Positions 22,795-32,566 of a stretch of DNA of 64,000 nt are shown here, one piece after another (within the stretch, counting starts at the first letter, position 1; each line of letters begins with the position of its first letter). Under the pieces are notes generated by a model. The model was not told the DNA's origin and ran no database searches. It saw nothing but the letters and a program-made list of their open reading frames with translations. The stretch covers positions 310,001 to 374,000 of the forward strand of contig CAJFCJ010000029.1 in NCBI GenBank assembly GCA_904063045.1, given 5' to 3'. Source of the DNA: Dimorphilus gyrociliatus (lineage: Eukaryota > Animalia > Annelida). A program made the translations under genes and the position numbers.

Positions 22795-24986
22795 TTAAAT
22801 CTGCATATTAGCGAAGCTATAAAAGAGTTCGATTTGGTAGGCAGCTGTTTTTGGATTCGTACTAAAGTAAACTAAACCCGTAGAACCGCGACTAACGTCT
22901 ATTAGAATTTCCTGGCAATGTTTTATAGAATCTTTACCATTATATTCTAATCCAATTACAGGTCCTTGACTGGCAGCCATGTCATAGTGACTTGAAGAGA
23001 ACATTTTTTTGGTGTCGGACGATTGCATAATAAATTCTCTTGTTAAAACTAGTAGGCAATGAGGCTATTAAGGGAAAAAAAGAAATCAAAATTAGATAAA
23101 CGTTTACACATTAACTTGCTAAATTGAATATCTTTATAGTTCCTATGTGATTTTTCTAGTTATTTCTTTTAATAAATATTTTCTTAAGTCTATAGAATAA
23201 ATCATAAAATTCAATATAGAAATGCATAGGATATCTTAAACATTTTATAAAAAAAATTCCTTTACAATTCAATAACGAGTCATTTTCTTTCTATTCAATT
23301 GAAAACTACAGAAAAGACTGCTAATCCAAAAAGATATTTTTGTGCTAAGAGTTATTAATTGCTAAAATATTCTTAATTGAAAGAAAAATATAATCACATA
23401 TAACGTAATTTAATTGCGATATATGCAGTATATCTATTATATCATATATTAGGATAAAAACACATGGAGATACTGCAAAGTAATCAATTTTACTCACATA
23501 TTTTTCCCTCATTTTTTCAACAAAATTTGAACAACGGTCATATTGTAGTCCATCATTAAACATGATGACTAAGCAACTGCTTTCATCGGCATTTTTGCAA
23601 TGAGATCCATATGTAAAAGGTATGATGCTTTTTTCCATTGAAAAATTTACCTCCACTTTGGATAAGACCTCTTCAGGCGGCAAAGGAACGTATCGACTAC
23701 AATCCTTCATATCGTCTGAATACATCAAAGAGTAACTAAGATCCCCACTATCTTCATTTACTCTATCCCAGTTATTATTATATACATTTATATTAGCTTC
23801 TCTCATATGATCTTCCAAGTTAGGGTAATAAGCTTGCAAACATCCAAATTTTGTTGCTGGAGATGATTCGATAACAGGTGGCGTTGTTGAACAAAGTAAA
23901 AGTTCTAGTTCCCTGCAATTTTTTGCTTTAAACTGCTGACAGGCAACCATTAATTTAATATTTTGGCAGTTTCGGCAGAGTACACTGTTTTATGTTTTAA
24001 AATGCATTATTTATCGCCTAAGAGTCAAAATGATTGCTGTTATTATAATTATCTTAGAAGTTCACCTATATTTAACGGCACCCACAAATAATCTGCAGGA
24101 ATCGCATTCTTCCAGTGATAAATGTGAAATATGATCCAAAATGTAGACGTTACAATTCTGATTAAAAAAAAACGTTATCATTAAGTTAATTAGCAAAGAG
24201 TATTTTTTTCGCTATTTTATATTAACCTTAATATTTTTTAAAATGAATTGTTCTCCGTTAATGCTACCTGGATATCGGACGATGCAATCGTCCGATATAT
24301 TCTCAACAGCAAATTCCTTTAATCTTTTCTTTCGTTCTCTGCAAAAAGCAACATTAAACTTTTTATAAAATATTCTTGCAAATATATTATATTTCTTTTA
24401 AAAAATCGTTCAGTTATATAAAACTAGACGTAGCAAATGCTGCGAAGGCAGCTCCATCTAACGAGTCGAGAATTTCCAGGCAAATCTAGGCCATTAGAAC
24501 CCTGGAAGGGCATGTATTTACCGTATGAGTCGCGGGGCCAACGACTGGTCGAATGAAGCAAAAGGTTGATGTTCTTCACGGAGCTTTACTTTTTAGCAGA
24601 CATCACATGCAGTATGTCACTTTTCCAGGTCTTGTTAAATGTTTAAACTACATTTTTGACTTTTGATTAAAAACACATCATTGCATATAACTTTGAGAGT
24701 TGCAAACTCTTGCACATATAAACAACATCATTGTATACTATTTGATCTTATTTATCTTTTTCAGTATGCAAAATCAATTTTGCAAAACAGTATAATCTGG
24801 AATTAGAATGGACTGGGTCGTAACTGGGTTTTTATAAATATTCTAGTAAAAATAATGTAGCAGAGAAATGAAATAGCTGAGAACAACGAATACTTACGCA
24901 GAGGAAAGACGTCTGATGGAGTGATTGGAAAAAGAAGAGCTCTCGTATGCATCCTCGTCCATACTCCGACTTTGTCGGCATCCCAT
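22795..24986 (-). CDS. RP2: RP2/XRP2 homologue (TBCC/CARP beta-helix Arl3-GAP domain plus NDK-like domain)
   Basis: Exons 24986-24898, 24338-24227, 24157-24066, 23984-23498, 23064-22795; phases consistent. N-terminal MGC acylation motif; PGSINGEQF, NCNVYILDH, ACQQFK, PVIESS, KFGCLQAYYP, DESSCLVIMF, GPVIGLEYNG and FYSFANMQ align with human RP2 segments. Confidence 0.9.
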
Positions 24987-25387
24987 TTCGCGAGTTTTGA
25001 AACAGAACCATTAACATTCAATAGTACACATTTTACAATGCATCGTTCTTCTTTCAAGCGCATGATCGCAAATGCAGGCGTGCTCGAAATAACGCTGATT
25101 GGCTGCAGTTTTCAGCTTCTGCTGCTGCTGTTGCTGCTGCTGTGCTCTTAAAAGTAGGCCTAGTTATTTGACACTTCACAGTACTTTAGCCCTTTCAGTA
25201 ATTTTATTATTTTTTTCTATTCGAAAACAAACCTTTCACCATAAATATTTTCGTATTTTGTACATTAATATGATTATTTAAACTGTACATTAAAAAATTG
25301 GTTACATAATTTATACAAGAGTGTACACAATCGCCTTTTCTTTGAAAATATAATTTACTTTCTAGATAATTATCAGTTCTGCAGCTG

Positions 25388-28300
25388 TTAAAAGAAGTTA
25401 GGCGCTGAGAATAAAATTGCAAACGTAGAACCAATAGTAAACAAAGTAAACATCCACAAACACAATCTATCAATCACCATAGCAGCAAATTTCCAATCAT
25501 TTTCTTCCTCTTCAAATTCTTCATCCTTTTTTATTTTACTAGTTAAAGTCTTCAATTCCTTCAAAATTTCAGCCAATTCGTTCTTGGGTAAAGCTGTCCT
25601 AAAAGCGGCATTACAACCTCCGTTACTACTAATTAACGTTTCATAAGTTCGAGTCTGATTGGGACGTACGAATCGGAAGTCATCATCTAAATCGAGGACG
25701 TTGGCTAGAAGAGATCGGGAAGAACGTTCCTTTAATTCCAAATCTCTCATTTTAGCATTTTGAAGTAATTTTCGACGTTTCATTTCTCTTCCAGGACGTT
25801 TTATTCTTAGGAACCAAGCAAGCCATTCACAAATGCCAGTTTTTACCTATATCATAAGTATGGATTAATACGCTCTTGTATATAACATATCCTGATTGCT
25901 TTTTCAAGTGTTCTTAATTGTTTGTTCTATTAATTGAACAAATTTAGGAGGTAATAAACAACCCATTAAAGCTTATCCCCAGAGATTGTAATGTTCTAAT
26001 TGATTCTACTAAGAGACTTTTCGCTTTTTTTTCGTATAAAAAAATAATTGTTCTCACTCGACGTACTTAAAAATTCATTAGAAAACATTACAAGATTTAC
26101 AAATAAGGATGCATCTATATTCATTTTTATAATACTTTATATATAACTAAATATGAAATAACGTAAATTTACCCAATTTGGCATTTGATGAGTATTCGGG
26201 GATCGATGATGGTAGTTTAATACAAGAACTGTAAAAACTACCGACATACTGCACATAAGCATTATGCAAGCAAAATAGAGCCCTATTAAAGGGACGGCGT
26301 CGCTGGTCGGTGGCATTGTTTCGGCGACGAGTAGCAGGAAAACGGTCAAGGATAAAAGAACGGTAACCCCTGAAAATAAATCCCTTAGATACCATTATGT
26401 TGATGATTCTTCATAACCATGCCCCGTTCATTGACGACATTGCACATCCTCCGACTACGGCATGCAACCGCAATATCCCGAACGCAGTGCGCCATCTGGT
26501 TTACTTGTTGGCTACGAAAAAGCAAATGAGCATGCAGGGTAGGATACCATTAGGATGTGAAAAAGATAAAGAAAAAAAGTTGCAAAAAATTCACATCTAT
26601 GTTTTGGTGATTAATGAAAATTAGGTGAAAAAAAATTAACAAAAAAGTAAATGATGAATAGACAAATTTCACTAACTCGCGATTCATGCGCACCTACCCA
26701 GCGATATTTTCTCGCCGGCATCCGGCGGTAAAACGAAGGTTAGCAGGGACATGGAAGAGATGAGCACACACGGAATGATCAGGTTGAAGCCGTAGTACAG
26801 AGTTCGACGCCGAATGTGGATGGTAAATGTGACGTCTATGTATTGTTCAGGACAACACTCGTAACTGCGCGTGTGACGCTTCCCAGCAACTTCTACAATT
26901 GTTGGAAGACTACAGTATAGTTGAATATTTCATACTTACCACACGTTATCTTTTCGCCGGCTTCGGAAGGCATAGCAAACATTACTAATGACAGTACTGA
27001 CATCATTAAACAAGGAACAACCAAATTGAAAACGTAATACAGATGGCGTCGTCTAATATGTAGTTCGAAAGTTGCGTCTATGAACTCTTGCTTGCAGCAG
27101 TCGTAGCGTTTCACGTTTCTGCGCGCCTGTAGTTCTAAACAATTTGCCCCAATCGTTCATTCATAAAGCGTAAAGCCGACGAAAAGCTATATCTGGGAAA
27201 ATAGGAAAATAAAACATCTAGCATCTCTTACCGATCAATTCCCATTCGCCGTTTGGAATAAAATCGGCTGTATCTCCGGTTTCCCTAAGAAGCAGGAGAT
27301 TTATTCCACTGCTATCGTAGGTCCATGAGCCAAATTTCATTGTGCACTTTTGATCATCAAAAGGGAACCACTTTATATCAATTTTACAAGTTGAGAGAAA
27401 TAATCCAGGAGGAACCCATTGACATAGTCCACTTGGATAAACAACGATATTCGTATGAAACGTACTGTCTATATCTTCGTCAGCACTATTATACATTAAT
27501 AGATCGGGCCGCCATATCTGATTGGCCGGCAATCGGATACTGCTTACATTCGGATAATCACTTTCGTTCCACTGAAGATTCGTGTCTGTCCAATGCTATT
27601 CAAGCAAAGGTGGGAAGGGAAGGGAATGGAAGGCAAGGTGTAGGAAAATAAAATTGAGGAGAGGGGGGAAAAGTGTGAAAGTAACAGAGATAAAGATAAA
27701 ATTGCGTTCGGAAAGGAGGGTAAAATGGAGAATGAAAATTGGTTGTGAAGAAAAGGAAGAAAAAGATTATTATTAGTAATTTTATTTAATAGTCACAGTA
27801 GCTAAAAAAGTATTTGTTTCATTTATCAAACCGTGAAGGACGTTTCCGATCAGTAGATAACTTACCATGTTTAACCAAGTATTGGTATGAATGACTTGGT
27901 TTTTTTCATCCTGTATGATATATTTACTTAATAAAATAATAAACACACTTTCTAAAAATTGGATTGAACTAAATAGTTCGGATTCTGTCTTTTGCTTTTA
28001 AAAGAGGAGAGAAGGGTGAAAAAACAGGAAATTTAGCTGTTCGGCAAACACGTCCTTCATGCTTTTATCTTTTTCTTTCCGCAAGGCCTCTACTTACCAT
28101 GTTCAACCAGACATTCGACGTTAAAATTTGGTTCTTTTCGTCCTGCGTGTGAACATGGCAAAGGTATGGCTTGCTATTTTTTTTAAATAATTAACATGCA
28201 ATCCATGATAAAAAAGAAAACCTCAGAACATAAATACGATTGAAAAACAATGAAATTCGATACACTTTTATTAGTTACAACGGGCGCAGTTAGAATTGGG

Positions 28301-30121
28301 ATGCTTAAAAAGAAATCATTGTACATCTAATGGAGCGTAAAAAGTCGAAAAACCCTCAAAAAAACAGCAGAGGCCTAATTTTTCTGTGGTATAAGCCAGA
28401 TTTTCCGACTACACCAACTAAGATGAGAGAAAAATTTAATGATCGTCATTTTCATTAGAGTAATGTCTGTCCTTTCAATTCTACTTTTTTCTTTCTGACC
28501 GTCTCTTACTTTATTTCTTTAACTGCCTATAATTTAGTTTCTGCTTCATCTTCTACTTCTGTCACTCTCACCCTCATCCTATATTTCTTGTCTCCTTTCT
28601 ACGCTTAAAATTCTTTTAATGTTTCTCACTGTCTTATTCTAGATCTCAATCCGTCTTCTTCTTTTTTTTCCTGTCCTTTTCTTTATTCATCATCTCGTCA
28701 CTCTATTTAGCTAGCTGTCCTCTTTCTCACCTGCTCTGATTTTCTAAATTAAGCGTGGGCGTTTCTGATTCTTAGAGAATAAATTATCAGGTTGAACGTC
28801 TTTTTACGATTATAGTTTAAATATAAGTGGGAACAAAAGGGTAAGAGGTATTAAACGAAATCAATCACTTGCTTACGACGTCTATAATTTGTTGCAAGGT
28901 GATCCCCAACGTAACATTAAGCGCGTCACTGTCACGCTCGACAGGTCGTTCTAACTTGTTATATTCTCTGACTTTGAAAATTTCGTGTAGCAGACGTCTT
29001 TCATTTGGACCCGATCTTACGAAGGTGCCTGTTTTAATCACAAAAAGGTGTTTTCAAGATTAAGCCGCAATACATGTGCTCCGTCGCCTTGGGGCCGGGC
29101 GATGGTCGGCTAATGGAGCGTGTCAGATCAACTGCAAAGTTGCGCCTGCTTATCGAACCGTCTGAGAAAAAAGCCGTTTTTCGGCCGTTATCACTTTCCC
29201 AACTGCAATTGACGCTGGTAAATATTTGCAGTCCTAATTGGACCTAGTAATTCAGAGAAGAAAAAAGCCTGTTCGATTTTCATCCTCTCTACCGTATTTA
29301 AATCCATCCTCTTCTTACCCCGGTCAGCAAATATTCCACTCATCATTCTTTTCATTTATTCCCCTTTACCCCTTTCCTCACGTTCTATTTTCTCCGTTTT
29401 TTATGGATTCCATTCATGTTTCGTGACCGCCTGTTACAGAGAGATAGGGTTTGCGGTCGATTGCGGTCGCGGGTCGAGCGTCGTTTAGGAAAAGAATGAT
29501 TTGTTGATGGTAATCGCTCCTAATCGCAACTGAATTAAAGTAATTGACCGTTCGACTGTCTTCCGGTGTAGGGTATTTTTCTCGAATCGAACGTTGCTAT
29601 GTACTTAGATGGAATATAGCAAGAACGATCATATAGAATTTGATGTATTTAATCTCAAGTTATAATGAAAAAGAAAAAAATTGACAACTTAGCGTAAAAT
29701 TACGTTTTTCGGCTTAGGCAATCGTCGATTTCAATTTCAGATTTGCTTATTCCCCACAGAATGTCGATAAGACAAACTTGAAGGATATAGAGCTTGAGCA
29801 TACATTTTTCTCTATTTAAATTTCAGAGAGCTTATTAAAGTGTTAGAAGAATACGAGAGGGAGACATGAATTTAATTATTTCCATGTCTAAGTGCATTAA
29901 TTTGCTCTATATACAGTATCAAAGTAAATATATATTATGTGACTAAGCCTTTGGCTTACAAAATTCAAGCAAAACAAATGAAACATCTGTCAATAGAGAA
30001 AAATCTGCCAAGTTTATACCCTGTCGAAGACTTCCACTTTGGATATTTTAAGTTTTTAATGAATCGGAAATTACTTACCACCGTAAGCTATTAGCAGATA
30101 GATAATCCTGATGTATAGCAT
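25388..30121 (-). CDS. Nicotinic acetylcholine receptor alpha subunit, alpha7 group (insect alpha5/6/7-like)
   Basis: Exons 30121-30079 (signal peptide), 29028-28877, [28142-28098 or 27910-27866], 27595-27232, [27134-26940 or 26892-26698], 26369-26173, 25846-25388. Cys-loop [15 protein letters not shown], loop-C vicinal CC, GEKI[13 protein letters not shown] (cation-selective), [23 protein letters not shown]4. Confidence 0.96.
26698..26892 (-). CDS. nAChR alternative loop C/M1 exon, copy b (canonical)
   Basis: ttgtag| 195 nt |gtaggt, phase 1 to 1; [65 protein letters not shown]; missed by the ORF track. Confidence 0.93.
26940..27134 (-). CDS. nAChR alternative loop C/M1 exon, copy a (divergent)
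   Basis: gtttag| 195 nt |gtaagt, phase 1 to 1; [65 protein letters not shown]. Confidence 0.9.
27866..27910 (-). CDS. nAChR alternative exon 3b (loop D)
   Basis: atacag| 45 nt |gtaagt; [15 protein letters not shown]. Confidence 0.92.
28098..28142 (-). CDS. nAChR alternative exon 3a (loop D)
   Basis: acgcag| 45 nt |gtaagt; [15 protein letters not shown]. Confidence 0.92.
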
Positions 30122-32566
30122 ATTATTTAACGAGCTTTTCAGCTCGAAAGCCGAAAAAAGCGAGAGACGTGGTTCAGTAGACGTGTAAAGCAATTATGAA
30201 AAAGTTTGCAGTTGCACTTAAAGACGCGTTGCTGCTGCGCATGCGCTCGCTAACTGGTTCACTTTTCCTCATAAGGTAAATAATTAATGACTGGATTGGA
30301 CACCCATACACAGCAATTCACTTTAAGTCGAAATTATTAGCTGCCTTGATTTTTAGCTGTAGACCCAAGTCCTTTGTTGAGTCGGTCCGAATTAAGACGA
30401 ACGTCGATTCTAGTATAGGCGACCATTAAGGACGAAACGACGTTCTCTAATCGAATTTAGCAGATGATAAAGTGCCGGCTAACGTTTGTGATTGATTCGA
30501 TTCTTGAAGCGGAACAAAAACGTTCGCTCATTAACGAATATCGAACGATTTAACACCTGTCTTTTCAAGTTTGAAAAAATGTGAGAATCGATTTCTCAAC
30601 CCTTTTTCAGGCGCATGAGCTATTCATTTATCTCCGTAAAGATCTCATCCCCTAGCGATTAACCGCATCGAAGGAAAGAAAAAGGAAGGCGACCGTCTAC
30701 GACACACGTATCGCCCTAAACTAAAAGGACACTTTATATTCGATAGCTAATTTCTTTCCTTTCTTCTCTCTTTTACTTTTATTTTCAAGAAGACCTCCCG
30801 ATTTCTAGGCCGAAAGCAGTTACTATTGTATATTTGTACAATGGATCGGTGCGCGTCAAGTTTTGACAGAGATAGTAATGAGTGTTTATCTTCTGTTTCT
30901 TTACGTCCTTTGGCTACTTCAACGACTCAGACTTGCTTATGTTAACTCAAGATATCTTCATAATACTTTTTGGTTAGGAAGAATTCAGCATGAAATTATT
31001 TTAGTAAAATATCTGCTTATCTATATGTTTATTAATTGCAATAACCTAATGAAAAGGGCATAAGGGCAGCTCTGACAAATTACATCGTACTATTCTGACC
31101 TCTTCAGAGGACTTTTTCTCGATTATAGTTTATTATCAAGTGTAAATTGAATTATGTCTAACTAATAAATATCTATCCAGAAATCTTTCGAAGTAATTTA
31201 GTATGAGTAGGCTTACGAGAGACCTATATTAAGCGCCAAATTCTTTTTAGTCGGAAGTAGAGTATTTATGTGGAAAATTGTTAAATTGCGCCACCTATCT
31301 GTAAAGACCTAAAAAGAAAAAAAAAGCAAAAAGGAAGAAAATCCTAAATACTCATAAAAGAGTGTGCAGATAAATCATAAAAAAAATAAGAATAGAAAAG
31401 GGTATGTTTTATGGTACTCTATATATTAAAAGGAAAACGATAAGAAATCTTATATCATATACAAATTCAGTGGAATAAGGATTATACTATATGTATGGCA
31501 TTATACGCAGTTTTGTAAACCTATAGATCTATCGAACACGTATATGAATATATTCAAGTAACTTTTGCATAAGTGTTCGCAGGAAATACCTTTATATAGT
31601 ATAAATACATAACATGAACATATTTTGTGTATAAATATATTGTGTAAAATCTACTTGTTAGGCTTTTATGTACATAAGCATAATACAAACAAGTACATTG
31701 TACGACGTTTAGCCCTATAGTTGGTATGTATACTTGTACGAGATAAATAAATATATCTTGTAACTGTGTAACCAAAGGGGGAAAATGAAAATTAATAAGC
31801 TGATTATTTCACTAACGAACCATTTGCTCGCATTTAAATTATATATGGTTAGTAATTCGATAAATAATCGACGAAGGTGAGCTTTTAAAAGTTGTGTATA
31901 CAATCGACCTTCACGGAAAAAAAATTCGATTGGGCTTATATCAACAATGATCTTTCGTCCTTGCTCCTTTTCACTATAATTCTATTATGTAACTTATACT
32001 TATATTCGTTAAAATACAAATTCGTAAATGCCTTGCAGCATATTCCATAAGAAATTTATAGATCCTCCTCTTAAATATTTGATTAGTAACAACATTGAAA
32101 AGGGATTGAAGATAGATAGAATTCAAATAGAAAGAAAACACTTATTATGTATTGTATATTGATATTTTATTCAATTTTTCATTATCATTATTATTATTAA
32201 AATTTTGAGATTTTCTAATCAATATTTCAAAAACAAAATACATTTTCATTTACATTTTTATATATAAAAGAACAAATTTGAAAAAATTTCATTGTTATAT
32301 AAAAAAAAAGAATAGTCTAAAGATAATAAAAAAAGCAAAAAATACGGGAAAAAAACTGAATAAACAAAGATGTCTGTTAATTAATTATCCACACAACATG
32401 ATCTTTTTTTGCTTCTTGTTTTTTTCCTATCATAAAAGAATACTGTCGGAACACACAGCACCGTGACTAGCAGTTGAAATAAAGAAACAGTTATTTTTTT
32501 TTTTATTTTTATGCTATCAACTCAAACGTCGGTTTTGTAATCGGATTTTTGGCACATTGAGAAACT

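Follow-up and report, generated by a model that had tools for sequence, protein, structure and literature searches.

Within the 64,000-nucleotide stretch of Dimorphilus gyrociliatus DNA analyzed here (hereafter the window), an alpha7-like nicotinic acetylcholine receptor (nAChR) gene on the minus strand carries two tandem exons, 7a and 7b, that encode the same segment of the subunit. This arrangement raises the question of whether each transcript takes only one of the two, for how long both have been kept, and which part of the receptor is altered by the choice. The evidence below makes it quite probable that 7a and 7b are a mutually exclusive pair homologous to the alpha7 exon for loop C, M1 and M2 as far as 3', and that this exon was duplicated before the annelid/flatworm split with both copies retained.

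Structure of the gene and its exon pair

Exon 7a (26940..27134, minus strand), the a-type copy, encodes loop C, pre-M1, M1, the M1-M2 turn and M2 up to 3'. Exon 7b (26698..26892, minus strand), the b-type copy, encodes this segment in a conserved alpha7-like form with Tyr195 and GEKISL. Each is exactly 195 nt long and of phase 1-1, with an AG acceptor and a GT donor (tttag/AA...TG/gtaagt for 7a and tgtag/AA...GG/gtaggt for 7b, the slash marking the border), and their translations end in AGEKITC and AGEKISL, respectively; lengths, phases and translations agree with the initial annotation, which had read two 195-nt phase 1-1 exons here. The copies have 31 of 64 residues (48% protein identity) and 111 of 195 bases in common. 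Adjacent, homologous, equal in length and phase, and each equipped with its own splice sites, they have the organization of a mutually exclusive cluster, and a second copy of the loop C-M1 exon within 1.5 kb was found at none of the best 28 other nAChR loci of the same genome. The intron separating them (26893..26939, minus strand; gtaagt...ttgtag) is the shortest of the gene at 47 nt, introduces an in-frame TAG upon retention, and shows at most about 2 differences relative to ~95%-alike relatives, as inferred from contig counts.

The remainder of the gene, all on the minus strand, is organized as follows. The coding part of exon 1 lies at approximately 30079..30121, with an in-frame ATG as start codon and the start of the signal peptide, and is connected by joint 29027>30078 to exon 2 (28877..29028). 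Exon 2 is joined in turn to either of two 45-nt exons, 3b (27866..27910; joint 27909>28876) or 3a (28098..28142; joint 28141>28876), which constitute the second alternative pair of the gene. The upstream constitutive exon (27232..27595) encodes loops A, E, B, the Cys-loop and loop F, ends in phase 1, and is spliced to 7a or 7b on one side and to exon 3b (27595>27866) on the other. It is separated from 7a by a 97-nt intron (27135..27231; joint 27134>27232, GT..AG), and a 328-nt intron (26370..26697; joint 26368>26697, cut +1, GT..AG) follows 7b. The downstream constitutive exon (26173..26369), placed by Pfam, contig joints and a frame check, encodes M2 from 4' on, the M2-M3 loop and M3; it is a single exon here and two exons in relatives, with a separate 87-nt M2 exon. 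The last exon (25388..25846; Pfam and joint 25844>26171, cut +2, GT..AG) provides the cytoplasmic loop, M4 and the stop codon. An exon-by-exon Pfam scan found Neur_chan_LBD and then Neur_chan_memb in the correct order, the former on the upstream exon (27233-27532, E 5e-32) and the latter at 26137-26349 (E 1e-20) and on the last exon (4e-11), and 7a and 7b both match the start of Neur_chan_memb. The Cys-loop of the upstream exon, 15 residues with its two Cys 13 residues apart, and the vicinal Cys pair of loop C, YDCC in 7a and YECC in 7b, are both present.

Correspondence to alpha7

When each exon was searched alone against the PDB, the best solved-structure match was human alpha7 for both 7a (62 bits, E 3e-16) and 7b (91 bits, E 2e-25), covering equivalent chain residues 179/180-240/241 at scores far beyond chance. 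Judged exon by exon, the closest solved relative is therefore alpha7 and not a heteromeric subunit, and 7b is 67% identical to it. Four residues past the vicinal Cys pair, 7a places a Phe opposite the alpha7 Tyr (Tyr195, mature numbering), such that this position of the aromatic box is Tyr in 7b and an aromatic residue without the hydroxyl in 7a; Phe is also the natural residue in several other invertebrate sequences among the matches listed. The GEK of each exon aligns with the GEK of alpha7, and position 2' is therefore Thr in 7a versus Ser in 7b, with Cys versus Leu at 3'. These alignments bear out the residue assignments first proposed for the pair, namely Phe for Tyr195 in copy a and the 2' and 3' substitutions.

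Transcript evidence for alternative use

Transcript evidence was drawn from assembled contigs of organisms A and B, which are ~95% alike to the window and are not raw reads of the sequenced strain. Four joints, all with GT..AG ends and all exactly at the predicted borders, connect each exon to its neighbors. Exon 7a is joined to the upstream exon (27134>27232, with a shorter side of 196 nt) and, with 7b skipped, to the M2-M3 exon (26368>26939), both in runs X1/X2; exon 7b is joined to the upstream exon with 7a skipped in run X3 (26892>27232) and to the M2-M3 exon in runs X1, X2 and X3 (26368>26697). The X1 contig containing 7a (record 4) also holds exons 2, 3b and 4-6. In the other three joints the shorter side measures only 28-30 nt, a length to be expected of junction unitigs at k=31 although it falls short of the bridging rule. 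No spliced 7a-7b joint was listed among the contigs of the runs; contigs cannot show absence, so rare forms with both exons or with neither may still occur. Unspliced sequence across the a-b intron is also present in the same runs. Since each exon is joined to both flanking exons with the other skipped, the contigs of these relatives support the mutually exclusive use that had been claimed for the pair.

Age and distribution of the pair

The same tandem recurs well beyond this worm. In Capitella teleta, an a-type exon is followed by a b-type exon, both of 195 nt with AG/GT borders, across a 150-nt intron (contig L038), and four further eukaryote contigs (L031-L034) carry the same a-then-b tandem of 195-nt AG/GT exons with introns of 54-795 nt. 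Gene models of the flatworm Macrostomum lignano also hold an a-then-b tandem, and one model (P0157) is a-only. The tandem in Capitella, Macrostomum and the four contigs, together with the tree results below, indicates that both copies have been kept by selection across species. Exon 7b is 84-86% identical to the b copies of Capitella and of other relatives. In phylogenetic analysis the a-type exons, including window 7a, Capitella and Macrostomum, form a clade (support 96/88) inside the spiralian alpha7-like group, and a and b types are together contained in a spiralian clade of 44 rows (support 97/83). A tree forcing a and b to be sisters in each species was rejected (delta lnL 225.5, p-AU 2.4e-5). 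Forcing only window 7a and 7b to be sisters costs 15.4 lnL and is not rejected (p-AU 0.126); only the multi-species constraint is thus excluded, and a recent duplication in this one species alone survives the AU test. Taken across species, these sequence comparisons indicate that the exon pair is old, with a tandem duplication that would predate the annelid-flatworm split. Word searches with the a exons of Capitella and Macrostomum returned no a-type full-length proteins beyond those two species, a negative that says little because isoforms collapse into 90% clusters.

Residues that separate the two types

The two types were compared across 19 a-type and 20 b-type exons of other animals. Loop C is nearly alike in both (YxCCPE[EQ]YID), and Tyr195 is kept in 16 of the 19 a-type copies. 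Type-specific positions instead fall in pre-M1, M1 and M2 positions 1'-3': in three alignment columns the two types have no residue in common, and in a further nine the majority residue differs, all from pre-M1 onward. The residue following the pre-M1 RRR is T in the b-type and K, Y, R or H in the a-type; M1 follows a 20-letter pattern of its own in the b-type and reads VFNLVVPC[LF][FM][LM]...LSL.VF.M in the a-type; and M2 1'-3' is I-S-L in the b-type, compared with V or I, then T or S, then C, F or M in the a-type. Because loop C is near-identical in both types and the type-specific positions all lie in pre-M1, M1 and M2, the conserved role of the switch would reside in the membrane part. The window pair follows this pattern in the membrane half, in which 7a is 74% identical to Capitella a and 51% identical to window 7b, and in this worm alone the loop C of 7a has drifted, with K, Q and F where P, E and Y195 stand elsewhere. 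The exchange of Tyr195 for Phe is thus for the most part peculiar to 7a of this worm. The earlier proposal, in which a single choice of exon adjusts agonist site and pore together, is not supported in that general form: it holds for the sequence of this species only, loop C being near-identical between the types in other animals.

The concentration of type-specific positions in M1 and at the M2 base, which in pentameric ligand-gated ion channels (pLGICs) pack against neighboring helices, also raises an alternative in which a and b subunits of one gene co-assemble, the M1/M2 differences tuning the interface and the a form being modulatory. Both forms do occur in the same run (X1/X2), and vertebrate heteromeric alpha subunits have Thr at 2', where Ser is found in alpha7. 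However, both isoforms retain the full principal binding face with its Cys pair, and bulk contigs cannot tell expression in the same cell or assembly; we regard co-assembly as unlikely.

A reading of copy a as a pseudo-exon, a duplicate that is decaying or no longer used while the gene effectively yields only the b form, is very improbable. Copy a is indeed the more divergent of the two, with 62 against 91 bits to alpha7 and a long branch of 0.98; in run X3 it is found only in an unspliced contig; and L033 has a degenerate-looking a copy in which PS replaces PC and GEN replaces GEK. In X1/X2, however, both ends of copy a are spliced, at exact GT..AG borders, and it forms part of a four-exon spliced contig. 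Its frame and splice sites are intact, its key residues are kept (Tyr188, the Cys pair, Asp197, IRRR, LYY, N, PC, F and GEK), and its orthologs persist in several animals besides one annelid and one flatworm. At the nucleotide level it has diverged from the sibling just as much as other coding exons have: relative to the ~95%-alike relative, 10 of 196 nt differ in exon 7a and 18/364 and 12/200 in the adjoining coding exons, whereas introns diverge more (28/385 plus 7 gaps; 44/406 plus 12 gaps), a level for 7a that is a hint of selection.

Inclusion of 7a and 7b together, so that the subunit would contain the loop C-M1 segment twice, would preserve the frame since both exons are 195 nt and phase 1-1, and automated models P0155, P0005, P0006 and P0007 hold both copies, but it can be almost wholly discounted, as contigs join each exon directly to the flanks with the other skipped and list no a-b joint, a second M1 would flip the membrane topology of everything downstream in the established pLGIC architecture, the copies of the arthropod-like contig L037 are just 21 nt apart and thus too close for an intron, and Macrostomum model P0157 has a alone joined to M2.

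Proposed mechanism and significance

Under mutually exclusive use, each mRNA would take 7a or 7b, yielding two subunit isoforms with everything else in common. The likely function of this switch is to alter those properties of the channel that depend on M1 and on M2 at its cytoplasmic end. Candidate properties are gating, desensitization, conductance and ion selectivity near the -1'/2' rings, and a transmembrane modulator or lipid-facing surface, or the subunit's packing partners, may also be affected; differences between the isoforms in gating, permeability and pharmacology are predicted here from residue positions. In this worm only, the drift of loop C in 7a should additionally shift agonist and toxin binding somewhat. 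As to how one exon is selected, steric blocking would be compatible with the 47-nt intron, in which plausible branch points lie just 19-24 nt from the 5' splice site. RNA structure was also considered as a selector and rejected: an inverted-repeat scan of 26369-27231 returned only short, chance-like pairs of 75-91% complementarity, and the fold of 26810-26950 has a z-score of -0.83 and is therefore not special.

A broader model, on which our judgment is evenly divided, is that of a spiralian two-state switch of the alpha7 type, in place since before the annelid-flatworm split, that would swap M1 and the M2 mouth (2'/3') while largely sparing the binding site, so that one gene provides two channel classes. 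Crustaceans would have arrived at the same swap independently, marking this exon as a hot spot, and 7a of this worm would couple the exchange of Tyr195 for Phe to the pore change.

We found no description of alternative exons at the loop C-M1 position in the open-access papers searched, and the exon pair appears to be undescribed so far. The alternative exons of insect alpha6 are a textbook case of nicotinic receptor diversification with relevance to insecticide resistance. A spiralian switch just as old yet distinct would offer a natural experiment on the roles of M1 and 2'/3' in an alpha7-type channel, with the swap of M1 and the inner pore mouth probably repeated independently in crustaceans. 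There is also a practical consequence for annotation: public gene models of Capitella, Macrostomum, Armadillidium and Amphibalanus contain both copies in tandem, and such models most likely describe a non-existent protein and hide the real isoforms.

Comparison with known systems

The closest described system is insect alpha6, in which mutually exclusive exons 3a/3b and 8a/8b/8c have stayed conserved for hundreds of millions of years (PMC1919356, PMC8505678). Like the window gene, it belongs to the alpha7-like group, has tandem homologous exons of equal length and phase of which one is used, and includes an exon 3 pair, which in the window gene is 45 nt. Exon 8 of insects carries TM2 together with the TM2-TM3 loop (PMC8505678 Table 1; PMC6393475) and corresponds to the exon following the one alternated in the window, where the alternated exon stops at M2 3', 4' onward lies in 26369-26173, and the body of M2 is constitutive. 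These same sources agree with the initial annotation that insect alpha6 alternates exons 3 and 8 rather than the loop C-M1 exon, and we found no insect case of an alternative loop C-M1 exon in the open-access papers searched. "Not this exon" holds for insect alpha6 but is too narrow for arthropods overall, since crustacean alpha7-like models carry a separate duplicate of the loop C-M1 exon.

In vertebrate CHRNA7, the equivalent exon, which covers loop C, M1 and the first part of M2, aligns end to end with 7a and 7b and is single and constitutive. Human CHRNA7 exon 7 is presumably also 195 bp. No a-type counterpart, with V/I after LYY, M before PP and C/F/M at 3', was found among the vertebrate matches listed.

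Crustacean alpha7-like genes duplicate the very same exon, as seen in Armadillidium vulgare (KAL7640434.1) and Amphibalanus amphitrite (KAF0300447.1), and the arthropod-like contig L037 does so too. Their copies resemble the window pair in being tandem, 195 nt long and of equal phase, and differ from each other in M1 and at 2' (GEKLSL vs GEKLTL). They fall with arthropod sequences in the tree, outside the spiralian clade in which the a-type and b-type exons lie; a separate duplication is their most likely origin, and their alternative use is putative.

Alternative homologous exons are found in other pentameric ligand-gated channel genes as well, including exons 3 and 6 of insect RDL and exon 3 of GluCl, where they alter defined functional loops. 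In Drosophila Dalpha4, the alternative homologous exon 4/4' changes a defined functional loop (PMC8505678). The alternative exons of Dalpha4, RDL and GluCl lie wholly in the extracellular domain; none of them spans the junction of binding site, M1 and pore, as the window pair does.

Gene structure and anatomy of the exon pair

The minus strand of the window, read over 26600-27260, carries two tandem alternative exons of an alpha7-like nicotinic acetylcholine receptor (nAChR) gene, 7a (27134-26940) and 7b (26892-26698), each 195 nt long, phase 1 at both ends, with an AG acceptor and a GT donor; lengths, phases and translations agree in every detail with the initial annotation. The 47-nt intron between them would, if retained, put an in-frame TAG at the intron end. 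In a pairwise comparison, 7a and 7b are identical at 31 of 64 residues and at 111 of 195 bases, with 20 synonymous and 33 non-synonymous codon differences; the duplicate is old rather than recent. Searched exon by exon, both are placed by Pfam at the start of Neur_chan_memb, and the flanking exons hold Neur_chan_LBD and the remainder of Neur_chan_memb. Among all solved structures, human alpha7 is the best match for both (62 bits for 7a, 91 bits for 7b), and the structure alignments lay them over the same alpha7 segment. The Tyr preceding the Cys pair is retained in both copies. Four residues past that pair, at the loop C Tyr195 site (mature alpha7 numbering), 7b has Tyr and 7a has Phe, and with the GEK of each copy opposite the alpha7 GEK, pore position 2' of M2 is Ser in 7b and Thr in 7a, and 3' is Leu and Cys, respectively; all three substitutions had been read from the DNA alone and are upheld by alignment to alpha7.

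The remainder of the gene was modeled from contig joints and frame checks, with GT..AG ends at every intron. It comprises, all on the minus strand, the coding part of exon 1 (about 30121-30079), exon 2 (29028-28877), an alternative pair of 45-nt exons, 3a (28142-28098) and 3b (27910-27866), a fused exon 4-6 (27595-27232), a fused M2-M3 exon (26369-26173) and the last exon (25846-25388). The exon 3 copies encode two different 15-residue stretches; in RNA contigs each is spliced to exon 2, and 3b also to exon 4-6. The same 45-nt pair occurs in the Capitella orthologue (L038, nt 4311 and 4614), whose public model carries both copies. M2 and M3 lie on a single 197-nt exon in the window, while the related loci L031, L032, L033, L034 and L038 have a separate 87-nt M2 exon, homologous to insect alpha6 exon 8, with M3 on a further exon in the four relatives where it was located; the compact genome of the worm has lost the intron separating M2 from M3. 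A trinucleotide repeat (25108-25147) lies directly downstream of the receptor stop codon.

Exon use in RNA of close relatives

A sequencing-run search, whose matches include coral metatranscriptomes and a probable source DNA run (X8), yielded runs from organism A (X1 and X2, one sample) and organism B (X3), and contigs of these and of run X5 were aligned to 24900-30400. The contigs are 90-99% alike to the window and thus come from close relatives other than the same strain. The initial annotation had proposed RNA junctions as a check on the exon pair, and all four joints of 7a and 7b to the flanking exons are present in these contigs. In X1/X2, the upstream exon is joined to 7a (27134>27232, shorter side 196 nt) on a contig that also holds exons 2, 3b and 4-6, and 7a is joined to the M2-M3 exon with 7b skipped (26368>26939, 28 nt). 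In X3, the upstream exon is joined to 7b with 7a skipped (26892>27232, 29 nt), and 7b is joined to the M2-M3 exon in X1, X2 and X3 (26368>26697, 28-30 nt). All joints have GT..AG ends and match the predicted exon borders exactly; sides of 28-30 nt are typical of k=31 junction unitigs, yet fall below the bridging rule of the method. None of the listed joints from the X1, X2, X3 and X5 contigs excises the 47-nt intron, where assembled contigs are evidence of presence and neither absence nor level can be read from them. The same runs contain contigs crossing the a-b intron and other introns unspliced, which fits pre-mRNA or DNA carry-over. The 7a/7b splice switch is real, ancient and backed by RNA in close relatives.

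An unspliced, genome-like contig of X5, a coral metatranscriptome, is ~91% alike to the window over 26339-27597 and holds both exons, indicating that a relative of the worm which has kept the pair is present in coral-associated samples.

The exclusive use of the two exons could be enforced by steric blocking across the a-b intron, which at 47 nt is the shortest of the gene and whose plausible branch points lie just 19-24 nt away from the 5' splice site. This mechanism would be compatible with the window; however, short introns are spliced well in this animal group (median intron 66 bp in D. gyrociliatus, with an assembly of ~78 Mb; PMC7854359), and one relative (L032) has an a-b intron of 795 nt. 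No RNA structure beyond chance was found at the exon pair. Decay of frame-shifted mRNA is ruled out as the filter, since double inclusion keeps the frame.

Distribution and age of the duplication

Within the genome of the worm (77.9 Mb in 349 contigs), this gene is the only one of the best 30 nAChR loci in which the exon recurs within 1.5 kb. In two paralogous alpha7-like genes, L002 (G000:C25:962511-962696) and L003 (G000:C1:389997-390182), the exon is b-type, with 81% identity to 7b, and no a copy lies within 1.5 kb of it; either the a copy was lost or these genes derive from a b-only copy.

When 7a was compared with 1.84 billion representatives in a full HMMER search, the top matches were proteins with two matched stretches, in which open frames and gene models read through an a-type and then a b-type copy. 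The a-type signature is RRR followed by K/Y/R/H, LYY[VI]FNLVVPC, M before PP and GEK[IV]TC. The same a-b tandem occurs in Capitella teleta and Macrostomum lignano. All fetched a-b loci have 195-nt exons with AG/GT sites, and their a-b introns measure 75 nt (L031, a eukaryote contig from a metagenome assembly), 795 nt (L032), 54 nt (L033) and about 76 nt (L034), these three also eukaryote contigs, and 150 nt (L038, C. teleta CAPTEDRAFT_221893). Both exon 7 copies are present in the public Capitella model, and M. lignano models have a then b (P0005, P0154) or a only, joined to M2 (P0157); several public gene models wrongly contain both copies. The a-type copy of L033 (5077-5271) looks degenerate, with M1 Pro-Cys changed to PS and the GEK ring to GEN beside an intact b copy, and this lineage may be in the process of losing the a exon. 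An 80-aa protein fragment (P0016) has a 7a-like extracellular half (RNVK.YDCC, DAT.ELHIRRR) and a purely b-type membrane half; it may have arisen by recombination or conversion, or represent a paralogue from a related species.

In a tree of 59 exon sequences, all the a-type exons, including the window, Capitella and Macrostomum copies, fall into a single clade (ultrafast bootstrap 96, SH-aLRT 88) nested within a spiralian alpha7-like group, to which all b copies and two b-type paralogues from the worm also belong. Constraining the window copies alone as sisters costs 15.4 lnL and is not rejected (p-AU 0.126), on a short exon of 63 columns and with 7a on a long branch; a joint constraint making a and b sisters in each of the seven loci is rejected (delta lnL 225.5, p-AU 2.4e-5). 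Together with the conserved a-before-b order, these tests place the duplication before the annelid-flatworm split.

What the exon choice changes

A column-by-column comparison of 19 a-type and 20 b-type exons found loop C near-identical between types (YxCCPE[EQ]YID), with Tyr195 retained in 16/19 a and 19/20 b copies. All type-specific columns lie from pre-M1 onward, three of them fully disjoint. They begin with the residue after RRR and continue with G in b versus V/I/L in a after LYY, II versus VV before PC, VLI versus L[FM][LM] in M1, M versus L, A versus S, T versus V, and L versus M/I before PP; in M2, b has I, S and L at 1', 2' and 3', where a has V, T and C/F/M, except that flatworm a copies have S at 2'. 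The membrane half of 7a is 74% identical to Capitella a and 51% to 7b. In the extracellular half, the two copies of one species (64% identity for Capitella a/b, 71% for Macrostomum) resemble each other more than copies of one type do across species. By these columns and half-exon identities, the conserved target of the choice is M1 together with the inner end of M2. The loop C half of 7a in the window has also drifted, with K, Q and F replacing P, E and Y195, and with A and E at later positions, a change at the agonist site that is a local addition in this worm. The proposal that one splice choice alters agonist site and pore together is only partly supported, the conserved part being M1 and the inner pore mouth. 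From the known roles of these segments in nicotinic receptors, the a/b changes would be predicted to affect gating, conductance, permeability or the choice of partner subunits; in this worm they may also affect the binding of agonists or toxins.

Comparison with known alternative exons

The main lophotrochozoan nAChR survey makes no mention of alternative exons (PMC6896357), and full-text searches of open-access papers gave no description of this exon pair. Among arthropods, gene models from an isopod, Armadillidium vulgare, and a barnacle, Amphibalanus amphitrite (proteins P0006, P0007), contain two tandem copies of this exon, with GEKLSL in the first and GEKLTL in the second, differing at 2', and an arthropod-like Logan contig (L037:1846-2256, SRR27257898) has two 195-nt copies 21 nt apart, a gap too short for an intron. 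Because these copies group with arthropod sequences in the 59-exon tree, the arthropod duplication of the same exon is most likely independent of the spiralian one. In Drosophila, exon 3 (loop D) and exon 8 (TM2 and the TM2-TM3 loop) of Dalpha6 are mutually exclusive and exon 4 (Cys-loop) of Dalpha4 is alternative (PMC8505678, PMC6393475, PMC1919356); none of these is the loop C-M1 exon of 7a/7b. The earlier remark that insect alpha6 alternates other exons therefore holds but does not extend to arthropods overall, where crustacean models duplicate this very exon.
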